A stretch of 12,756 bases of DNA from Salpingoeca rosetta (taxonomy: Eukaryota > Protista > Choanoflagellata), in contig JAWQFM010000019.1 in the NCBI GenBank assembly GCA_033442325.1, positions 903,574-916,329 on the forward strand, in the 5' to 3' direction. This document shows, one piece after another, positions 1 through 9,850 of the stretch. Position 1 is the stretch's first letter. Each line of letters starts with the position of its first letter. The notes under the pieces were generated by a model. It was not told where the DNA came from, searched no databases, and saw nothing but the letters and a program-made list of their open reading frames with translations. Position numbers and translations under genes: made by a program.

Positions 1-220
1 GCACCCCAACGTCCCGGTAGGGGGTCGCTGTATGTTCGCCGGCATATGGTGGTGATTTGGTGTTTCTGGGCAAGCGAGGGCTGAGATAAGTCTATGGATG
101 AGGAAAGGCAAGTAACTCTGCCCTAAAGTTAGGTCTTCTCTGACGAAACATGTTGGCGTATATCATTTCACCCAAGCACAGTAGTCGTTGCGTCGCGTAG
201 TCACAATTCACTTTCCAATC
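1..220 (-). pseudogene. Possible degenerate downstream exons (or 3' UTR exons) of the Cys/Asp-repeat gene
   Basis: A good acceptor (TTCTTTTGGGCTTGACAG|, exon starts at 220) is followed by TGT GAC TAC (CDY) and, in a shifted frame, AAC GAC TAC TGT (NDYC). A second acceptor-like site lies near 92. There is no in-phase open continuation. Confidence 0.3.
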
Positions 221-416: not shown

Positions 417-1384
417 TCATAAGACAAACGCACAATCATCGCAGCTGTCGTAGCAGATGTCGCAGCCAGAGTCGCATCCGCTGTAGCAGATATCACAGCC
501 CTCGTCTGAAGTTATGTGGGCAAACACCGCATGCGTCCAAATGTTAGACCACGAATGCCATCCGTTGTACGTTGCCGTGCAACACGGGAGGCTGGGGCAA
601 TGATGCATGGTGTGGCATGTTTGAGCAACGCACCACAGCCTCCGTCGCACGAGGTGTCGCAGGAGTCGTCGCAGGTGGTGACACAGTAATCACAGCTGCT
701 GTCGCAACTGCCTGTAAATGGTGGTAAAAATGAAACAGACCAAAGCGGTGAAGAATGCTGAGTTAAACGACACAAACACACGAGTCAACGGCATCACAAG
801 CGTAAAAGCACGCGCTTGCGGTGTGTGATATGCAGATGGTGCTCGGAAGCACAAGAGAGATTTGCTCTGCACTCACTGTCGCATCCAAGGCTAAAAATGA
901 CGCAGCTGGAATCACAGCTGTCATCACAGCTCGTACAGTTGGTCGAACAGCTCCTGAAGGTCACGGACGTGTGAGACAGCTCATGAGCGGTGGGCAGCAG
1001 TAGAAGGTACAGGAACAGAAGAAGAGAAGACAACAACAAAACCCGAGCAAGCGGCCAACATCGATGCGTGCGAACAGCTCCACGCACGCCTGTCTATGTT
1101 GAACTTACGAGTCGCATCCAGAGTCGCAATAATAATCGCAGCTGGCAAAGAGAAGCAGGCAAAGGAGAAAGAACAGGGGACAGAAGAACATTCGAGCGGC
1201 AACAGGTGAACAGTGTGGGTTCATGCACGTATTGGGTTGCCTTGCAAGCTCAAACAGGACTTACGCGCCAGCATGTTGCACAAGCGTGTGTGTGTGTGTG
1301 TGTTTGGAATGTATGGAGACGAGCTTCCTTACCCGTAATCGCAGCCAGCGTTGCAGTTGTCATCACAGAAGTCGTCACAACCAC
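417..1384 (-). CDS. Core exons of a spliced gene encoding an acidic Cys/Asp-rich (C-x3-C / C-x2-C) repeat protein of unknown family
   Basis: Five exons at 1384-1333, 1141-1109, 953-877, 711-634 and 505-434. Each has a CAG acceptor and a GTAAGG, GTAAGT, GTGAGT, GTGCGT or GTGCGT donor, and the phases match. Joined translation: GCDDFCDDNCNAGCDYGCDYYCDSGCDSSCSTNCTSCDDSCDSSCVIFSLGCDSSCDSSCDYCVTTCDDSCDTSCDGGCDEGCDICYSGCDSGCDICYDSCDD. The 3' end is ambiguous: read-through to TGA at 417-419 (...DDCAFVL*) or a splice to the acceptor at 220, which creates T|GA. Confidence 0.8.
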
Positions 1385-1512
1385 CTGTGTGATGTTACAC
1401 AAAAGCAGCCAAACAGCGTGACTCCTTTTGAGGGCTATGACACACAGAGAGAAGACGTTAGAGTAGGAGGCAAAGGAAACAAGGACATCATGTCTCTAGT
1501 CTGTCAGCAAAC

Positions 1513-2156
1513 CCATCTGCGACAGTGCGTGCGTCGTGGTTGACAGTCTTTCAGAACAGGCGTCCCCATCAGCCACAGAGAGCGTGACTCGAGCAGGGGA
1601 CGGAGACAAGAGGAGAGGACAAGCCACGGTGAACCGCACACGCAGACGTGTTCGTGGGTGTGTGTGTGTGTTTGCATGAATCTGTGATCGAACACGTGTG
1701 CATTGCATATGCGTGATTACGAAAACTGCAAATCAACGCTGCTGGTTTCTTTGGAGTGGACAAGCAGTCACAAATCACACCGTACCAATGAAACATTGCA
1801 TTGAAGTATTGAACTGCCCGTAGTTCTTTCGTTCTCTTGTCTGCAGCAACAGCAACGTGAGGTGAGTAACGGTTGGCGATGGATGACCACGCTCTCCCTT
1901 TCACACGTGCCCAGCTCCAAGGCAGATTTGACTTTGGGATTGAGCGATCCGTTTGCCCATCTTTGTGACGCATGCGCCTAAATTTTCGCGCCATTGGTCC
2001 TCCTCTCAGTCTCTATTTTCTTGTCGACCACAAACCACGCCACTTTCTACCTTCCGTTTCGCTTGGTCGCCTGTTTGCCGTGCTTACTGTCTGGCTGACG
2101 CTGTTGTTGTGGAGCTGTGTAGAGAGAAGTCTTGAACTGGAACCATGCCCCACCAT
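1513..2156 (-). CDS. Putative 5' exons of the Cys/Asp-repeat gene
   Basis: Exons 2156-2088 (ATG...CAGACA|GTAAGC), 1840-1786 (GCTGCAG| ... |GTACGG) and 1587-1513 (weak GAG acceptor, |GTTTGC donor) join in phase with each other and with exon 1384. Translation: MVGHGSSSRLLSTQLHNNSVSQT-TRERKNYGQFNTSMQCFI-VTLSVADGDACSERLSTTTHALSQM-GGCDDF... A competing strong acceptor near 1434 and a hydrophobic stretch upstream of 2156 make the exact model uncertain. Confidence 0.4.
1968..1997 (+). promoter_or_regulatory. Cluster of E2F-consensus site, inverted CCAAT box and CGCATGCG palindrome
   Basis: TTTTCGCGCC at 1983-1992 is immediately followed by ATTGG at 1993-1997, with CGCATGCG at 1969-1976. Motif match only. 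Confidence 0.35.
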
Positions 2157-2793
2157 GTCTGTCGCAAGTGTGGCCGTGAAGTGAAGCACAAGCACAGGAG
2201 TGCGCAAGACGGCACCATCGAGCCATCGTCACACAGGAGGACGACACGCATCATGATACGCAGCAAGCTGACTCTGACACATGGCTCTCGTGAATACGTC
2301 TTCGTTGCTTGCACTGTTGGCGTGTTTGGTTCTTCCTCTTCTTGATGGAGTGGCCTGTGATGATGGCGATTAGCCCTTCAGGCTGCTTGAGTTGTTGAAT
2401 TGCACACGAGTGGCGAAGACCTTGGTCGTTTGGTCGCTATCTCTAGCGTCTCTCCTTCTCTGTTGGGTGTCTTGTCGACGTGTCATAAACGAATAAACAC
2501 CATTATCTCGTTAGGGGAATCAGTTCAGTTACAGAACGGGCGTTATTCGTTTGGGAGTCAGTGCCAGCACACACAACACACGCGTGCATTGAAGAAGTGT
2601 GGGCAAAGAAGAGGGATGGTGCACGCTGTCTGGACGTTGAACTGCATGCAGTCGACACAAGATGCCGGGTGGTCAACGTAAAGGCCTGTGTGAGTGTGTG
2701 GGTCTACTCCACTCGGCAGTCGCGGTGGAACAAAGGAAACAGAAGATACACGAAGCACGCAAACAAAGGTCGATGCAATCGTTCGACACTCAC

Positions 2794-4478
2794 CACATGA
2801 GGTTCATCAAAGGAGGCAGAAATCCGCACACACTAAAGGTAAGGACACAGACAAAGACAGACAGACACACACAGAGACAAAGACAGACAGACACAGAAGT
2901 GCACCATGAAGTAATTGCTCACCCTCCTCTGTCTTTCATGCACACAGATCCATGTGTTTTGTTCCCTACAGCTCCAGCTGAAACCTCTAGCTCTGCGCAT
3001 TCGCCGTGCACGCAGACATGCATATCCTTTGACAAACCAACAAACCAGATCCTTTGACAAACCAACAAACCAGTCTTGAATATGGCGCGTGTAACACGTT
3101 CGGCACATCGACACGCAAGCAATAAGCTTGCCGGCCTGCGGTCCTGTCGACCAATGCTGTCCACACGCTTGCCCATGAGTGAGGCATTGGGACGCAGAGG
3201 CAGGAATGGAGAGAGGACAATAGCAAGGCAGCAGAATGAAAGTGCAAACACAGAGAGGCGCACAACGAGGCGCTGAGACACTGAAGCGAACACACACACA
3301 CACACACACACACTCTCTCTCTCTTTTTATGCTAGCACAAGCATACCCTCCCTCCGTCCTTCTTCTCCTCTGCCTCACTTTGGGCGACGTCGACACATCA
3401 ACGAACATACACCTCCATGAAGGCGCCATTCGAAGCACTGCCGAGAAATCCAAGTGCAGACTGCTCTGCGTTGGCGGATGTACGCAAGGGCCTCAGCGAC
3501 CCAGTTTCGCCCACGTCGTCCAATGGACGGCGGGCGTTGTGACCAAAACTCCACGCGAAGCCGCGTGTGCTTTCGCCATACATGGAGTCGGAGCCGTGCC
3601 ATCGCCATCAACACGTCTTCGTCGCATCTGCTTCCTTTGGCGGACACACGTTGCAGCTTCAGACAGCCGGTGCTGCACGGCACCGGGACGTCTGAGAAGA
3701 GGGCTTGAAGGGAATCGCCGGCCAGCGCACCTTCGTGCGCGATCCACTCGCCCGTGTTGGAGACAAACAGCACGTCCACTGCCTTTGGAAACCACGCGTT
3801 TCCTTTGAAGTCGTTCTGGCATTCTGCTGTTCAAACGAGTTCTTGGTTTGACCACAGGTTGCAGCGATTCAATGTCCATGTATTGGTGCCGTCGTTTGAG
3901 AAGCAAGCGGCGAGCGTCCACGGGTGTGCACTTTCACCTGCGATCTCCACTTCGCATTTCGTCGTCGCCAAGAACGTCTGCAATGCCCGAGTCCACGTCG
4001 CACCTGAGCGAATTCCTGTTCAGCAAGTCTTTCATGCTGGCGATCTCGTCCTGAAGCCTTGCAACGTGTTGTGCAGGCCTTGCACGTCGACGCCGTTCGG
4101 GGTCTGTGGGGTTAATTACCAGCCTGCCGGAATCATCTTCTTTGAGGACAGCGCCCAACACCGCAGTCGGATGCGGTGCCAAGTACTGAAGCAGCAGAGC
4201 CGCTGCCAAGTAGGAGTGTGAAAGGAAGAAAGGAACAGCGTCCACTCTTCCACTGCCTTTGCTGTCGAAAACACCAGCACGCATGTTTGTTTCCTCGCGC
4301 ATTGTTCAATTCTGTTCTTGTTACGTCGTTGAGGTACACGAGGGAGGACGGTGTTTGGTCTTTCTGCTTGAGTTCGCTCACGCTCACGCAAACTTTGCTC
4401 TTGCTTGCAGACTTACAGAGCTTGGGGGGGGGCTGGTCTTTGAGTGAGTGAGACTTGATGTCAAGAAAAGCAAACCAT
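2794..4478 (-). pseudogene. Intron-containing pseudogene of an unrecognised protein
   Basis: Exon-like segments: 4478-4417 (GAAGATGG start context, |GTAAGT), 4202-3379 (pyrimidine-rich ...GGCAG|, |GTGAGG), ~3143-2923 (|GTGAGC) and 2832-2794 (TTTAG|, |GTGAGT). Complex protein-like text (AFLDIKSHSLKDQPPPKLSALLLQYLAPHPTAVLGAVLKEDDSGRLVINP...; EVEIAGESAHPWTLAACFSNDGTNTWTLNRCNLWSNQELV*TAECQNDFKGNAWFPKAVDVLFVSNTGEWIAHE...) is broken by apparent frameshifts near 4473, 3957 and 3460, an in-frame TGA at 3831-3833 and a 25-bp duplication. Confidence 0.55.
3024..3073. repeat. Perfect 25-bp tandem duplication
   Basis: ATCCTTTGACAAACCAACAAACCAG at 3024-3048 and 3049-3073. Confidence 0.95.
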
Positions 4479-5169
4479 CTTCAGCAAGAGAGTGGCCGGA
4501 AAGTGGAGGATGCTGAAAGACTGAAAGAGATGCTCAGGGTGTTTGTTTGTTCACCCTCACCACATCAGCGAGCTGAAGAGCTAAAGCTGTCTCACTCACG
4601 CGAGAAGGCCACGAATTCGCAAATAGTACAACAACTCCTAACAACTCGAACACGCAGAAGAACGAGGCGAACGAAGCAAACCCCATTGACCCGTTCGTTC
4701 GCTGTCCCACCCACCGAGCGCACCGTTGTCTCATCTTCGCCTTTGTTCGATCCACCCAATGGGGACAAACCGGGACAGCCTTGCGGGCTTGCTCACGACA
4801 CACGGGAAATTTTCTCCATTTCTGGTGTTCGTTGCTGCTGTGCTGTTGTTTGTTGCCTAGCGTCCCACACCTTGGCTTTCAGGCCTTTTGTGTGCTTGTG
4901 CGTTGTTTCGCTTGTTGTCCCTCCACCTCTCCTGAGGCTTTCCCCTCAGCCACTCTCTTCCCTTTCTTCCCACATTGCTCCCTTCTTCTTCTTCCTTTCA
5001 TTTCTTCCTCTGAGCCGACTGCTGTCTCTTTGCATTGCTGTCGCACAATTTGCCAGAGCAAGCCTTCATTCACCCTTCCACCCCGAGCACCTGAGCACCT
5101 CCCCGGCGGCTTGACCTGTTGGCTGACGCCAGGACAGAAGACTGCACTGCACACCCAACGCACCCACCC

Positions 5170-5186
5170 ACACACACCCACACACA

Positions 5187-5270
<84 letters not shown>
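5170..5270. repeat. (CA)n microsatellite, slightly interrupted
   Basis: Directly visible run of about 100 bp just upstream of the ATG at 5292. Confidence 0.95.
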
Positions 5271-5291: not shown

Positions 5292-5574
5292 ATGCCATCC
5301 TCCTCCGTTTTCAGGACCGTGGCCATTATGGCGGCGGCGATTGTCCTTGTAACGACGACGGGCGGCTTCCAGGGCGAGGCCAGGCCATGCACGCGTGCAT
5401 GCAAGACGAAGCAAAGGTGAATGAACGCGCCTTCTAGCCTTCTAGCCTCACCCCTCGCCCAAGTGTGCGGACACAGCGATGACGACCTACCGCTGAGCTT
5501 TGGTCACTCATTTTGTCAAAGGTTTGAGCGCACGTGCGTCAAAATGAAGCTTGTGTCTGAGCACAGCCGGAAAG
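5292..5574 (+). CDS. First two exons of a putative secreted or membrane protein gene
   Basis: GACGAC-ATG at 5292. Exon 5292-5416 encodes MPSSSVFRTVAIMAAAIVLVTTTGGFQGEARPCTRACKTKQ (signal-peptide-like), followed by |GTGAAT. Exon 5522-5574 is in phase (RFERTCVKMKLVSEHSRK), followed by |GTATGA. An in-phase acceptor TTCACAG| precedes 5763 (GCALSFRNRSSQAWANTPNT...). Further exons are not resolved. Confidence 0.45.
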
Positions 5575-6909
5575 GTATGAAGGCTTTGCTGTTCCTGCTT
5601 TCATTGCTTGCATGCAAGCATGCGTGTTGTGTGTGTGCGTGCGTGTGCATGTGTGCACTTGGTAGTGCAGCTCATTAGCTCGCTCACAAATGTGCATCCC
5701 TTTCACCACAAGTCGTTCTTGATGCTCGTTGTCTTACTTCTTCCTCCACATCACGTTCACAGGCTGTGCGCTCTCTTTTCGGAATCGCAGCTCTCAAGCA
5801 TGGGCAAACACGCCCAACACAGTGTGCTGCACACGATGGAATGCATGTTCGTTTAAGCTCACACGTGTGCGTGTGTGCGTGTGTGTGTGTGTGTGTCTCA
5901 TCACAACTGGTGCAGCTTGTGAACTGCTCGTGATCGTGCGTGTCGTTTCGTTTGTGTTCTTGTGGGTTACGCGTGGCCGTCCTTGCTCTTGCTGCCAGAC
6001 ATGGCCCTTATTCCGTTGTTGGTGCTGCACCTCCTGCACTCCTGCACTCCTGCACTTGGCTCACGATGTGATGTGTTACTGCCTCCGTTCCATCCGTCGG
6101 TTGTGTTCGATGTAGAACCTTGGGGTATGAGCGACAGATGACAAAAGCGAGGCACTGCTGCGGCTGCTGCGGCTGTCGTTGCTGCTGTCACACCCGCAGA
6201 CTACGAACTGCACCACAGAGGTACACAACCAACCCCGTCTGAATGCATTTGTGCGCGTCATGCCTCTGTCGTTGCTTGTGAGGCTTCAACCACACTCACC
6301 AGCCATCATGCGGTGTTGTGCTTGTGATCCTCCATTGTTGTGCGCGCGTGTGTGCACGTGTGCACGTATCGTCGTGACGGGTCCACCATGCCTAAGTGCT
6401 CACTTGCAGCACTCTTGCTCAATGTTCACTGTTGCACCCTCACCGTTCTCTTCTCTCATGTCATCTTCTCTCGTCTTACAACTCGTCGCCCTTTAAACAC
6501 CCGACACGGGATACGTTCCCACATCCTACCACTCTCGCTGCTGCCACAAGCATGCCGTCGCTTGCTGCTGCTGTCGCTGCTGTGATGCACAACCTGCCCG
6601 ACCTCTGAGGAGCCATGAGCGCAGAATGCTCATCGTTACTTTTGCATGGCCTCCCGCACAGCTGCCTGCTCACCAGTGCAGACACTGGTGACCCCCGAAC
6701 GGCGAGCATGAAGGAGGGCGAGCGAGGGAGGAGCAACAGGGTGGCGAAAGAGGGTGGTGAGGGAGACGCTTCGAGGACACAACCAGCAGCAGCAGCTAGC
6801 GTGCGTGGATGAACACACATACGTAGTTGGTTTGAAGGCTCACCGGGTCAGGGTCATGCGTCAGCAGCAACTGCTGTCCTCTCCTCTCCAGGTATCTGTT
6901 TTGTGTGTG

Positions 6910-6910
<1 letters not shown>

Positions 6911-6988
<78 letters not shown>
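6911..6988. repeat. Perfect (TG)n microsatellite, probably intronic
   Basis: Directly visible; follows a plus-strand donor-like CCAG|GTATCT near 6892. Confidence 0.95.
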
Positions 6989-6990
<2 letters not shown>

Positions 6991-7335
6991 CCTTTCATTT
7001 GCATGCGGTGCCAAGTCTACTCCACCGACCTTGCTCTCTTGCTGTTCTCGTGTTTCGTTGGAGGTGCACAACACTCTCGTCACACCCACTCACGTTGTCG
7101 TTCTTGCGCACTGCCTTCTTTCTGGGCCATTGTCGCCTTTGTCCTTGCACCAGCTCTGCGACGAGGAGGAAGGACGCGTGCTTGTGCCTTGTGGAGCCCT
7201 GTTGCCCCAAGCAAGCAGAAAAACACGCATGCAAACTGCAAACTGCGCAACTGCTGTCGCATTTTGAACACCGACAGCATAATTTATACCCAAGGTACAG
7301 CCTGGGAAATGCACTTTTCACATGCAAGCACGCTC

Positions 7336-7366
7336 GCACACACACACACACACGCATGCATGCACG

Positions 7367-7407
<41 letters not shown>

Positions 7408-7455
7408 ACACACATACACACACACACACACACACACATACACACACACACACAT
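7336..7455. repeat. Interrupted (CA)n microsatellite, probably intronic
   Basis: Directly visible; ends just before the acceptor-like TGTCCAG| at 7461. Confidence 0.9.
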
Positions 7456-7461
7456 GTCCAG

Positions 7462-7875
7462 GTGGTCAGTTGGTTCACATTGTGCACCACTTGACCATAC
7501 GTCTTTGAAGGCGGTGGTGTGGTCGCTGCCGTCCCTGTTAACGCCACTCACGCACAGCTCCTCACGCGTGCACGGAGCATCCGCCACGTTACCTCATCCA
7601 CGTGCGTATGTTGCGTATGTGCGAGTGCGTGTGTGAAAGGGGCACAAGCATACGCGCATTCCCTTCCTCTGCCACGTCGTTCGTCTCACGTGACGGTTTT
7701 GGACGTTGCGATTGTTGTTGTGGTTGCTGTTGGTTGTTGTTTCTGTTATTCTTGTGCTCATGCAGGTACCGCCACGATTACAGTCATCCACACCGGTTTG
7801 GTGACAACGCCACGTGGATGAAGGACGCCTGAAGCGGGCACGCATGTGCGCTGTGCTGCCCAAACATCACGTGAC
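7462..7875 (+). pseudogene. Degenerate coding exons, possibly the 3' part of the gene starting at 5292
   Basis: Exon 7462-7601 (|GTGCGT) and an exon starting at 7766 (CTCATGCAG|) join in phase: VVSWFTLCTT*PYVFEGGGVVAAVPVNATHAQLLTRARSIRHVTSSTYRHDYSHPHRFGDNATWMKDA*SGHACALCCPNIT*. There are three N-x-T sequons but internal TGAs at 7492 and 7830. Confidence 0.35.
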
Positions 7876-7894
7876 ACCCCGAGCACCAGCACCA

Positions 7895-7933
7895 GTAACA
7901 GCAACAACGGTAACAGCAACAACGGTAACAGCA
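7895..7933. repeat. 15-bp tandem repeat, about 2.6 copies
   Basis: GTAACAGCAACAACG x2 plus GTAACAGCA. Confidence 0.9.
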
Positions 7934-8620
7934 CAGCAGAAGCCATGATGCTGTGGTCGCGTGGCTTGCGTTCATGACGTGATGAGATGGAGGCTTCCGT
8001 TTGGATGATGACGGCAATGGGCGATGCGAAGATGCATGATGACAGCAGAGTGGATACCAGAATGGGAAGAACAACAGCCGTCAGCTTACAATGGTGGTGT
8101 GGGTGATGCCCGACGCACCACCATTACCCACCGCCAACGATGCAGTGGCACGCGTAGCAAGAACAGCGTAGCGGTGCACGTTGGTCCATTTCTTTCGTCG
8201 TCTTTGGCACCTTGACCACCACTGCCACCACACCACACCTGGCGCTGACACAAGCCTCGCCAACATCGTTCTCCTTTGCATTCACGGCTTCTTGCCGGGT
8301 CGTGTCTGCTGGCATTTTAAGACCCCAGATCATCACGACGACACCAACAGCAGCATCAACAACGACGACGAAAACAGCGAGCGCAGACACCATGCTGCGA
8401 GGCAGAAGGCAACAACAACCACGATCGCAAGCAACAACAGTAGCACACACACACACACACACACACAACAGCAAGCGACACCCCCATACTCCACCGCCGC
8501 CACCGCCACCACATTACATCACATCGTGTCATTAGACCACCGTGGAGTGGTGTCATTTGCCAAGATGAGGTCGAGGTCGCTGGGAATTGGCAGCGGCACG
8601 TGTATGGATGGATGGTCCCA

Positions 8621-9850
8621 CTACACGCCCAGCTGCATGTGGTGGTGCCGCTGTCCCATTGGGAGGAGGACGTCGACACCGTCATCGTCTTCGTCTTCCT
8701 CATCGGCCTCGTGTCCACCATCATCAACGCTGTCTGTGCACCACGGGCCGTGCACTGCCTCTACATACGGCTGCTGCTGGTGTTGCGGTGTCATCATCAT
8801 CATCGTCATCATTGTCATCATGTCCAAGGGATGTTCCGTGGCTGGCTGCATGAGTCCTGCCACCACGTCCTCCTCCAACAGCAGCAGCGCCGTGTCGTCA
8901 TTGTGACCGCGCGTGTCCTCCTGCTGCTGGTGCTGGTGCCATGGCGACCACATCTCGCGCATGCCGATCAAGGCCTGGGCCATGACCGGGTGCATGGAGG
9001 CGAAGGACGGACGGGTCCGCGGGTGGTGCCTGTGACGATGGCGGCGGCGGTTGCGATGGTGGCGGTTGCGATGGCCGTCATACTGCTGCTACTCAAGCAC
9101 GATGGAGGCACACGGGGTGACACAGCGAGAGGTGAGCATGTGTGGCAGTAGTGTGATTGATTGTGTTGGGTGGAATGGCTGGGTTGGCTTGCCGTCACCT
9201 CTCATATGTGTTTGTGTGTGTGTGTGTTTGTGTACTTGAGGCACGATGATGCTCACACGCGTATGTGCTCACATGCGTATGCTCACATGCATTTGTGTGT
9301 ATGTATGTGTGTATGTGTGTGTGTTTGTTTGCTTGCCAGAAGCAGGCGTCGTACCTGGTGCTGATTGGCGAGCGCGTGTGAGATGCGCTGTTCTTCTTCA
9401 TCTCCAAGCACGTGGAAGCTGCAACCAAACATCCACAGGCCACAGCAACACGGGTCAGCCGTGAATGCTTTGGGGCAACAGCGCATGCAACAGCACAGGA
9501 ATATGCCACGCACACGGTTCCTTCACCTCTGACCTCCACGCCTGAGCCCCACCTCTCAACAACCTCTCCCCCCCGCCTAGCGCACACAAACACGAGTACG
9601 CAGGCGGGTGTGCGTGCGTTTCTGAAGACACGATGGCAACTGTGGAAGAGGACAGGCAAATGTGAGTATGTGTGTGTGTGTGCTTGCTCTCGCTCGCTTG
9701 CCTTCCTCCCTGTTTGAGGCTTCGTGCCCTCGACTGCTGTCCATCTGTTCTCCACCCCTTCCCACCAGCACACACACCGATGTCTACTTTGCTTTGCTTG
9801 TCTTCTCTGTGTACTGTGAATCCAGACTGACGTGCACGCACCAGCAGCAA
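8621..9850 (-). CDS. Four-exon 3' portion of a low-complexity hypothetical protein (His/Arg-rich then acidic)
   Basis: Exons 9850-9778, 9639-9600, 9418-9355 and 9088-8621 have GT-AG boundaries and matching phases: ...VHREDKQSKVDI-VAIVSSETHAHPP-AFHVLGDEEEQRISHALANQHQ-QQYDGHRNRHHRNRRRHRHRHHPRTRPSFASMHPVMAQALIG...GGHEADEEDEDDDGVDVLLPMGQRHHHMQLGV*. The start exon is not established. Confidence 0.5.

Follow-up and report, generated by a model that had tools for sequence, protein, structure and literature searches.

Ladder exons in the window

The window analysed here, a gap-bounded stretch of 12,756 nucleotides of the 55.4-Mb Salpingoeca rosetta genome (G000:C19:903574-916329; public record GL832976.1), carries on its minus strand five small exons that together encode a ladder of regularly spaced cysteines. 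The copy of the locus in the window is referred to below as C19. In the order of transcription, and with a slash marking exon boundaries, exon 1 (1384-1333, 52 nt) reads x/GT GCDDFCDDNCNAGCDY GG/, exon 2 (1141-1109, 33 nt) reads CDYYCDSGCD, exon 3 (953-877, 77 nt) reads SCSTNCTSCDDSCDSSCVIFSLGCD, exon 4 (711-634, 78 nt) reads SCDSSCDYCVTTCDDSCDTSCDGGC, and exon 5 (505-434, 72 nt) reads EGCDICYSGCDSGCDICYDSCDD and ends in phase 1 at the donor T/GTGCGT (433-428). Every one of the five exons is preceded by a [CT]AG acceptor, and the donors of exons 1 to 5 are GTAAGG, GTAAGT, GTGAGT, GTGCGT and GTGCGT, respectively. Phases agree at all four junctions, and a codon-by-codon walk through the joined exons gives 312 nt, or 104 codons without a stop, which comprise 26 Cys, 25 Asp, 18 Ser and 10 Gly and not a single Lys, Arg or His. 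The original prediction, made from the letters of this DNA, had proposed five exons spliced in phase with these counts of Cys and Asp and without Lys, Arg or His, and all of its numbers hold in this walk.

Cysteines were also predicted to recur mostly every fourth residue, and this is the spacing of 20 of the 25 Cys-Cys intervals in the five exons, the remainder being spaced by three (four intervals) or seven residues (one interval). Asp directly follows Cys in 19 of 26 cases, and neither CC nor C-x-C occurs anywhere across exons 1-5. The unit of the ladder is a tetrad, C-[D/N]-x-[S/G/T], in which Cys stands at every fourth residue with an acidic residue directly after it. No stop-free stretch of 25 codons containing at least four Cys pairs spaced by 4 was found elsewhere in the six frames of the window, the exception being frames from (GT)n microsatellites, which read CVCVCV. 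Codon usage within the ladder is mixed (TGT 10 and TGC 16; GAT 9 and GAC 15), and Tandem Repeats Finder recovers just 2.4-3 copies of 12-nt units from the ladder DNA. The mixed Cys and Asp codons, together with the weak 12-nt periodicity of the DNA, therefore argue that the rhythm is kept at the protein level and did not arise from recent DNA slippage.

Microsatellites of the (GT)n/(CA)n type are found in the window at 250-337, 1284-1306, 1650-1680, 3290-3330 and 5150-5270, among other places, and the one at 5150-5270 matches hundreds of places in the genome. Many introns and intergenic stretches contain them, both at this locus and at all its paralogues, and they regularly lie just 3' of the GTGCGT donor of the JmjC ORFs described below.

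The ladder exons are part of a public gene model

We searched 1.84 billion representative proteins with phmmer, using as query a 54-residue ladder exon from the C29 paralogue, and obtained 84 matches. Among them is 'hypothetical protein PTSG_07438' of S. rosetta (P0052; XP_004990942.1 / EGD77103.1 / UniProt F2UIQ4), a protein of 360 aa whose C-terminal third contains ladder exons 1-5 letter for letter and in order (at ~residues 253-355). The gene had originally been described as hidden, and in this respect the description has to be corrected, as the same five exons with the same joins are already present in PTSG_07438 / F2UIQ4. When the window was searched with this protein using tblastn, matches of 100% were obtained for a linker exon, here called exon C (residues 235-252), for exon 4 (residues 307-331) and for exon 5 (residues 332-360).

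The N-terminal 234 residues of the model come from two further minus-strand exons within 3459-4284, exon A (4284-~3950) and exon B (~3826-3459), which have no Pfam match. Across the three copies of the locus on C19, C30 and C31, these exons show a pN/pS of ~1 and gaps that are not multiples of three, a pattern that makes their annotated coding status doubtful. Exon C (1786-1840, minus strand; TRERKNYGQFNTSMQCFI+G; TRERKNYGQFNTSMQCFIG) has cag as its acceptor, in phase 0, and its phase-1 donor, G/GTACGG, fits ladder exon 1. It contains MQCFIG, the only in-frame ATG upstream of the ladder, and is the homologue of an exon that carries a furin-type site in JmjC-bearing paralogues; the motif reads RERK here.

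At its other end, the model reads through the exon-5 donor (417-433, minus strand) into CAFVL and stops at a TGA (419-417), and this stretch corresponds to intron sequence in the paralogues on C30, C31 and C12. Beyond the exon-5 side, 2126 N adjoin the window in both sequence records, and the next public model (444 aa) occupies a short readable piece between two N runs. PTSG_07438 is thus probably a fragment cut by the N run, the simplest reading being that, with the remainder of the gene behind that run, gene prediction went on into an intron stop.

Segmental copies and conservation of the ladder exons

Sequence related to the window is found at three other places in the genome. C30:4901-10961 aligns in two pieces, with 94% and 87% identity, and C31:509544-514570 aligns with 88% identity from window position 6 to ~5200. 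The third, C12:1724747-1725905, belongs to a gene that bears a JmjC domain; it is 96% identical to the window, and so are its ladder exons to those of the window, with the alignment limited to positions 260-1417. Outside this block the flanks are unrelated or only 75% identical to C12. The block looks like the product of gene conversion or of an exon-block transfer between a JmjC-bearing and a JmjC-less gene.

All ten splice sites and the reading frame of the five exons are kept in the four copies (C19, C30, C31, C12), and the sole exon-internal indel among them is an in-frame deletion of 3 nt in exon 4 of C31. Substitutions between copies fall at synonymous sites and at the two variable positions of the tetrad, with Cys and Asp retained, and dN/dS in the ladder exons is 0.17-0.29 (~0.2). 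At the level of sequence, the exon structure and its purifying selection are well established by this comparison, which bears out the prediction that these are coding exons and provides, in C30, C31 and C12, paralogues whose splice sites and frame are intact. Since block 260-1417 is close to C12 without its flanks, part of the apparent purifying selection could have been imported by gene conversion.

Upstream of exon 1 (window 1420-2400), the C19, C30 and C31 copies diverge by 1.5-3.9%, compared with 7.6-13.8% in the ladder introns, and at ~1860-2060 they are 100% identical. A CCAAT box and an E2F-like motif (TTTCGCGCC) lie near 1985-2000. This conserved stretch may act as a promoter in both directions, or it may have undergone gene conversion recently.

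Continuation of the gene past exon 5

In C30, C31 and C12 the exon-5 donor (T/GTGCGT; G/GTGCGT in C31) joins further ladder exons in phase, of which the first reads CNGNCDYGCDD.CAW and the second TYCDDYCDDGCG. In C30 the in-phase chain can be followed from exon 1 via five ladder exons after exon 5 into CYCNPGYYG.. (DDSCDTCTPISCDTGCDSSCYCNPGYYG...), and the continuation in C31 matches the Pfam domains TNFR_c6 (5e-50 and 4e-20), Sushi (1.6e-14) and EGF_CA (5.7e-9). Just downstream of the Sushi/EGF exons of C31 lies a Ty1/copia-like retrotransposon with integrase and RNase H/RT ORFs, partly N (5482-9468 of G000:C31:515000-524999, minus strand).

For E6 and E7, the two exons that come after exon 5 in the paralogues, the window retains no more than decayed relics. 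The relic of the CNGNCDYGCDD.CAW exon (172-219, minus strand) has a shifted acceptor AG, a replacement of Cys by Trp and a frame-breaking 1-nt insertion, and the relic of the TYCDDYCDDGCG exon (1-35, minus strand) is cut by the window start and has lost its acceptor and Cys codons. Continuation across the N run would therefore need a jump to an exon outside the readable sequence, and joint loss of the two relic exons would preserve the phase. On the far side of the N run, C19 carries the same TNFR-repeat ORF on the same strand, open for 549 codons, with pN/pS of 0.49 and 0.52 against C30 and C31 (0.34 between C30 and C31). By homology with those two copies, the C19 product most likely continues into this ORF. 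In view of the continuation seen in the paralogues, the protein of ~103 residues envisaged in the original prediction is probably not a protein of its own, and represents one segment within a much larger family of proteins.

JmjC-bearing paralogues and the wider family

The loci with a JmjC_2 domain that we examined lie on C6, C21, C14, C29, C27 and C12. Each has an ORF of ~370 residues with a significant JmjC_2 match (1e-16 in the case of C12); these ORFs are ~50-60% identical to one another, and the iron-binding HxD...H motif is visible in them (PHTD ... GIIH). A GTGCGT-type donor and a (GT)n microsatellite close each ORF, and beyond these the same strand carries 8-14 small ladder exons. The ladder is in turn followed, again on the same strand, by TNFR/ephrin-receptor-like repeats at five loci (C6, C21, C14, C29 and C27); at C12 such repeats were not detected within the stretch examined. 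The first ladder exon of the paralogues carries a furin-type motif, which reads QERRRRNTVTASYTC (RRRR), RVRR, RTRR or RDKR, and exon C of the window aligns with these linker exons and with P0083. The latter is encoded by one uninterrupted 1539-nt ORF on JGI metagenome contigs and consists of a signal peptide, a JmjC_2 domain (5.8e-15), the motif RRSRR, a ladder and a C-terminal membrane span.

Signal peptides are also present in the small ladder proteins P0055, P0075 and P0088, the last encoded on a compact TARA scaffold, and the JmjC ORF of a relative (P0090) begins with one. A further group of ladder proteins (P0059, P0086, P0087 and P0089) shares a conserved head and a 'AIGWSERLAAAA' tail. 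Membership of the ladder in a paralogous family and its extracellular domain context are thus both evident, as far as sequence comparison goes. The original prediction had suggested that the ladder may be a metal/Ca2+-binding or disulfide-stapled extracellular repeat, and an extracellular role of the disulfide-stapled or Ca2+-binding kind is indeed the most plausible, in view of the joining of the ladder to TNFR_c6, Sushi and EGF_CA domains in the paralogues and with the signal peptides of ladder proteins elsewhere.

The repeat is not confined to this locus: the ladder is found at no fewer than ten loci in the S. rosetta genome, that is, at least ten, and ladder proteins occur in marine and other metagenomes. 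At the DNA level, the pattern TGYGAY-N6-TGYGAY-N6-TGYGAY is found at 152 places in the genome, many of them microsatellites, compared with 23 for the reversed control. A protein search of the same genome with the 54-aa C29 exon gave only three places, which is attributed to composition correction. The C29 ladder exon itself (G000:C29:560670-560831) is absent among its own 84 matches in the 1.84 billion representative proteins, and of these 84 only PTSG_07438 can be placed at S. rosetta loci, so that public gene models seem to lack the ladder exons of the other paralogues. Gene prediction seems to miss such tiny exons elsewhere.

The strongest matches to the ladder exon (P0001-P0051) are long C-E-x-x / C-x3-C arrays (SCETGCEVSCETGCE...), mostly in metagenome proteins of 600-1400 residues. 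Some of these proteins start like phage tail/host-specificity proteins, and P0003 has a weak Phage-tail_3 match. These Cys-Glu arrays probably represent a ladder of phage tail fibres that arose by convergence or is distantly related, and we know of no description of it.

The JmjC-less copies and the start of the gene

Neither the window nor its C30 and C31 copies show a detectable JmjC domain. A tblastn search of the whole window, which has N on both sides, with the JmjC ORF of a paralogue gave E>3, alignment of P0052 with a six-row JmjC profile using hhalign gave a probability of 8%, and a tblastx comparison of the upstream region 1839-4700 with the JmjC loci returned nothing meaningful. Exons A and B were considered as a possible JmjC remnant, and this was rejected, as the BLASTP matches had E values of 0.11-0.9 and were out of order, and the hhalign probability was the 8% given above.

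For the C19/C30/C31 subfamily a start codon with a signal peptide was not found. A candidate first exon lies upstream of annotated exon A at 4686-4600 on the minus strand (MGFASFASFFCVFELLGVVVLFANSWPSR/GTGAGT), with a phase-0 consensus donor. Its ORF is kept in C31 and its GTGAGT donor is missing there, and it is a possible signal-peptide first exon. Another candidate at 1490-1447 (MMSLFPLPP..) was rejected, as C30 carries an insertion of 2 nt that breaks its phase.

The only signal-peptide-like ORF nearby is at 2281-2373 on the plus strand, opposite to the ladder exons, where MALVNTSSLLALLACLVLPLLDGVACDDGD runs into a 'CDD' start; C31 has a stop right after ..LPLLD, and the segment that contains this ORF (2167-2853) is tandemly duplicated in C30. 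It may be a first exon of the ladder gene that was left stranded or became inverted, or an unannotated divergent gene may begin here.

Interpretation of the ladder

The reading that we favour, with a probability of roughly 70%, is that the five exons are coding exons of PTSG_07438 and that the ladder is a recurrent small-exon module of a family of receptor-like surface proteins. The full form of such a protein would consist, in order, of a signal peptide, a JmjC_2 (MINA/NO66-type) Fe/2-oxoglutarate oxygenase, a furin-type site and the ladder, after which TNFR/GCC-type cysteine repeats, Sushi and Ca-binding EGF domains would follow. C19, C30 and C31 are segmental copies without a detectable upstream JmjC domain, with the furin motif of the window decayed to RERK. 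We take the ladder to be extracellular, with oxidised Cys, because every readable context is secretory, and its most likely role is that of an acidic spacer outside the cell, stapled by disulfides. Its cysteines would be oxidised to disulfides, probably between neighbours four residues apart, its Asp residues would create a strongly acidic and possibly Ca2+-binding surface, and the whole would form a stiff rod or spacer that separates a distal head from the TNFR-type repeats.

It is also conceivable, though in our judgement improbable, that C19 is a decaying, non-functional copy: a 5'-truncated duplicate without a JmjC head, a signal peptide and two ladder exons, in which recent gene conversion from C12 mimics constraint. 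Such a history would account for the identity of 96% to C12 over exactly 260-1417, as compared with 92% and 87% to C30 and C31, and the decay of E6 and E7, the pN/pS of ~1 and non-3n gaps in exons A and B, the degraded furin motif RERK and the lack of a detectable JmjC domain all point in the same direction. However, all three JmjC-less copies have kept their splice sites and frame at an exon divergence of 8-16%, and the downstream ORFs of 549-774 codons have no stop or frameshift despite ~70-130 substitutions, with pN/pS of 0.34-0.52; phase is also preserved if E6 and E7 are lost together.

We regard as quite unlikely a stand-alone small cytosolic Cys/Asp-rich protein, acting as a metal-thiolate buffer like metallothionein or phytochelatin and ending at CAFVL TGA (419-417), which would have its start where the public model places it (360 aa) or else at the exon C ATG (MQCFIG..), giving ~113 aa without a signal peptide: the public model does end at CAFVL, the in-frame ATG of exon C is the first one downstream of the 100% conserved stretch with the CCAAT and E2F-like motifs (~1860-2060), both exons after exon 5 are decayed in the window and no signal peptide was found, but in C30, C31 and C12, which splice in phase from the exon-5 donor, the CAFVL stop lies in an ordinary intron, constraint is evident in the TNFR ORF past the N run, CxC/CC clusters and a Pfam metallothionein match are absent, and all other ladder contexts are secretory.

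For the window itself the result of the preferred reading, a spacer module in receptor-like surface proteins, is modest, with PTSG_07438 being probably an N-cut fragment with a doubtful N-terminus. The ladder as such is compact, extreme and widespread, yet without a family name or a solved structure, and, standing in a fixed place after a secreted JmjC oxygenase and a site of convertase type, it is the obvious candidate for a substrate or working part of the surface-protein family predicted in 2010. A bolder proposal, which we hold to be a long shot, is that the ladder is a built-in substrate of the secreted JmjC head, with the Asp/Asn beside each Cys being hydroxylated. A parallel would be AspH, an unrelated enzyme, and the beta-hydroxy-Asp/Asn of EGF domains. 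If this were true, the ladder would form a rod that binds Ca2+ and is stapled by disulfides, copies without JmjC, among them the gene in the window, would be modified in trans, and the closest relatives of animals would possess a new class of system for post-translational modification outside the cell. The JmjC-less locus in the window would be a potential natural control, as a ladder without its enzyme.

Comparison with known families and systems

No Pfam family scored above its cut-off on the ladder, whether single exons, longer paralogous exons, P0052 or the metagenome ladder proteins were used, and sub-threshold matches to C_tripleX, SCIFF, New_glue and TIL were dismissed as noise. A PDB sequence search with the 54-aa ladder exon gave 0 matches at E up to 10. 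The ESM Atlas yielded no feature match and a model of its own with a pLDDT of 0.34; its structure neighbours (RlmD, GH2, pentapeptide) had TM scores <0.5 and were considered meaningless. AlphaFold2 modelling of P0052 from a 10-row alignment gave a pLDDT of 40.7, with the ladder <50 and no confident fold. Literature searches on PTSG_07438 and on Cys/Asp-rich or CXXXC repeats produced nothing relevant. The view that the repeat belongs to no named family is thus upheld, with the sub-threshold C_tripleX as the Pfam result, an empty PDB search and no paper found.

In terms of Cys spacing, the ladder is the same as C_tripleX (PF02363), a C-x3-C-x3-C repeat of nematode proteins, which scores 14.5 bits on exon 4, 7.5 bits on exon 3 and <=17 bits on the longer paralogous exons, against a gathering score of 22.9; the ladder is Asp-rich, whereas C_tripleX is not. 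The C-x3-C rhythm is also that of the cysteine-rich domain of minicollagens and NOWA (CxxxCxxxCxxxCxxxCC), which is extracellular and disulfide-linked. In contrast to this closed unit of six Cys ending in CC, the ladder has no CC, is acidic, contains tens of Cys and is open-ended across exons. With metallothioneins and phytochelatins it shares a very high Cys content and, as in (gamma-Glu-Cys)n, an acidic residue beside Cys. Unlike in metallothioneins, there are no CxC/CC clusters, and the context is secretory, multi-domain and of disulfide type; no Pfam metallothionein match was found at E up to 10 with the exons or P0052. The lack of CxC/CC clusters and the secretory context make a metallothionein-like role unlikely.

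As a working analogy we use thrombospondin type-3 repeats, which are likewise acidic and Cys-stapled segments of an extracellular kind, with Asp-rich Ca2+-binding loops, disulfide staples and little secondary structure. Their motif, DxDxDGxxDxxD, has a longer period and differs from that of the ladder, which has no TSP_3 match in Pfam.

The closest precedent for the domain context comes from Iyer, Abhiman, de Souza & Aravind 2010 (NAR 38:5261; PMC2938197), where receptor-like extracellular MINA/NO66 JmjC proteins were predicted in Monosiga. Their architectures combine JmjC with GCC2/3, Ig, disintegrin or Sushi domains as well as SH2 or tyrosine-kinase tails; unnamed Cys-bearing 'MSD' domains were also reported, and hydroxylation of surface proteins was proposed. 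The C-D-x-x repeat as such is not described in the text of that paper. The window, C30 and C31 differ from these receptors in having no detectable JmjC domain. The six JmjC-bearing paralogues of S. rosetta, by contrast, resemble them, with JmjC_2 directly upstream of the ladder in all six and TNFR/GCC-like repeats in five.
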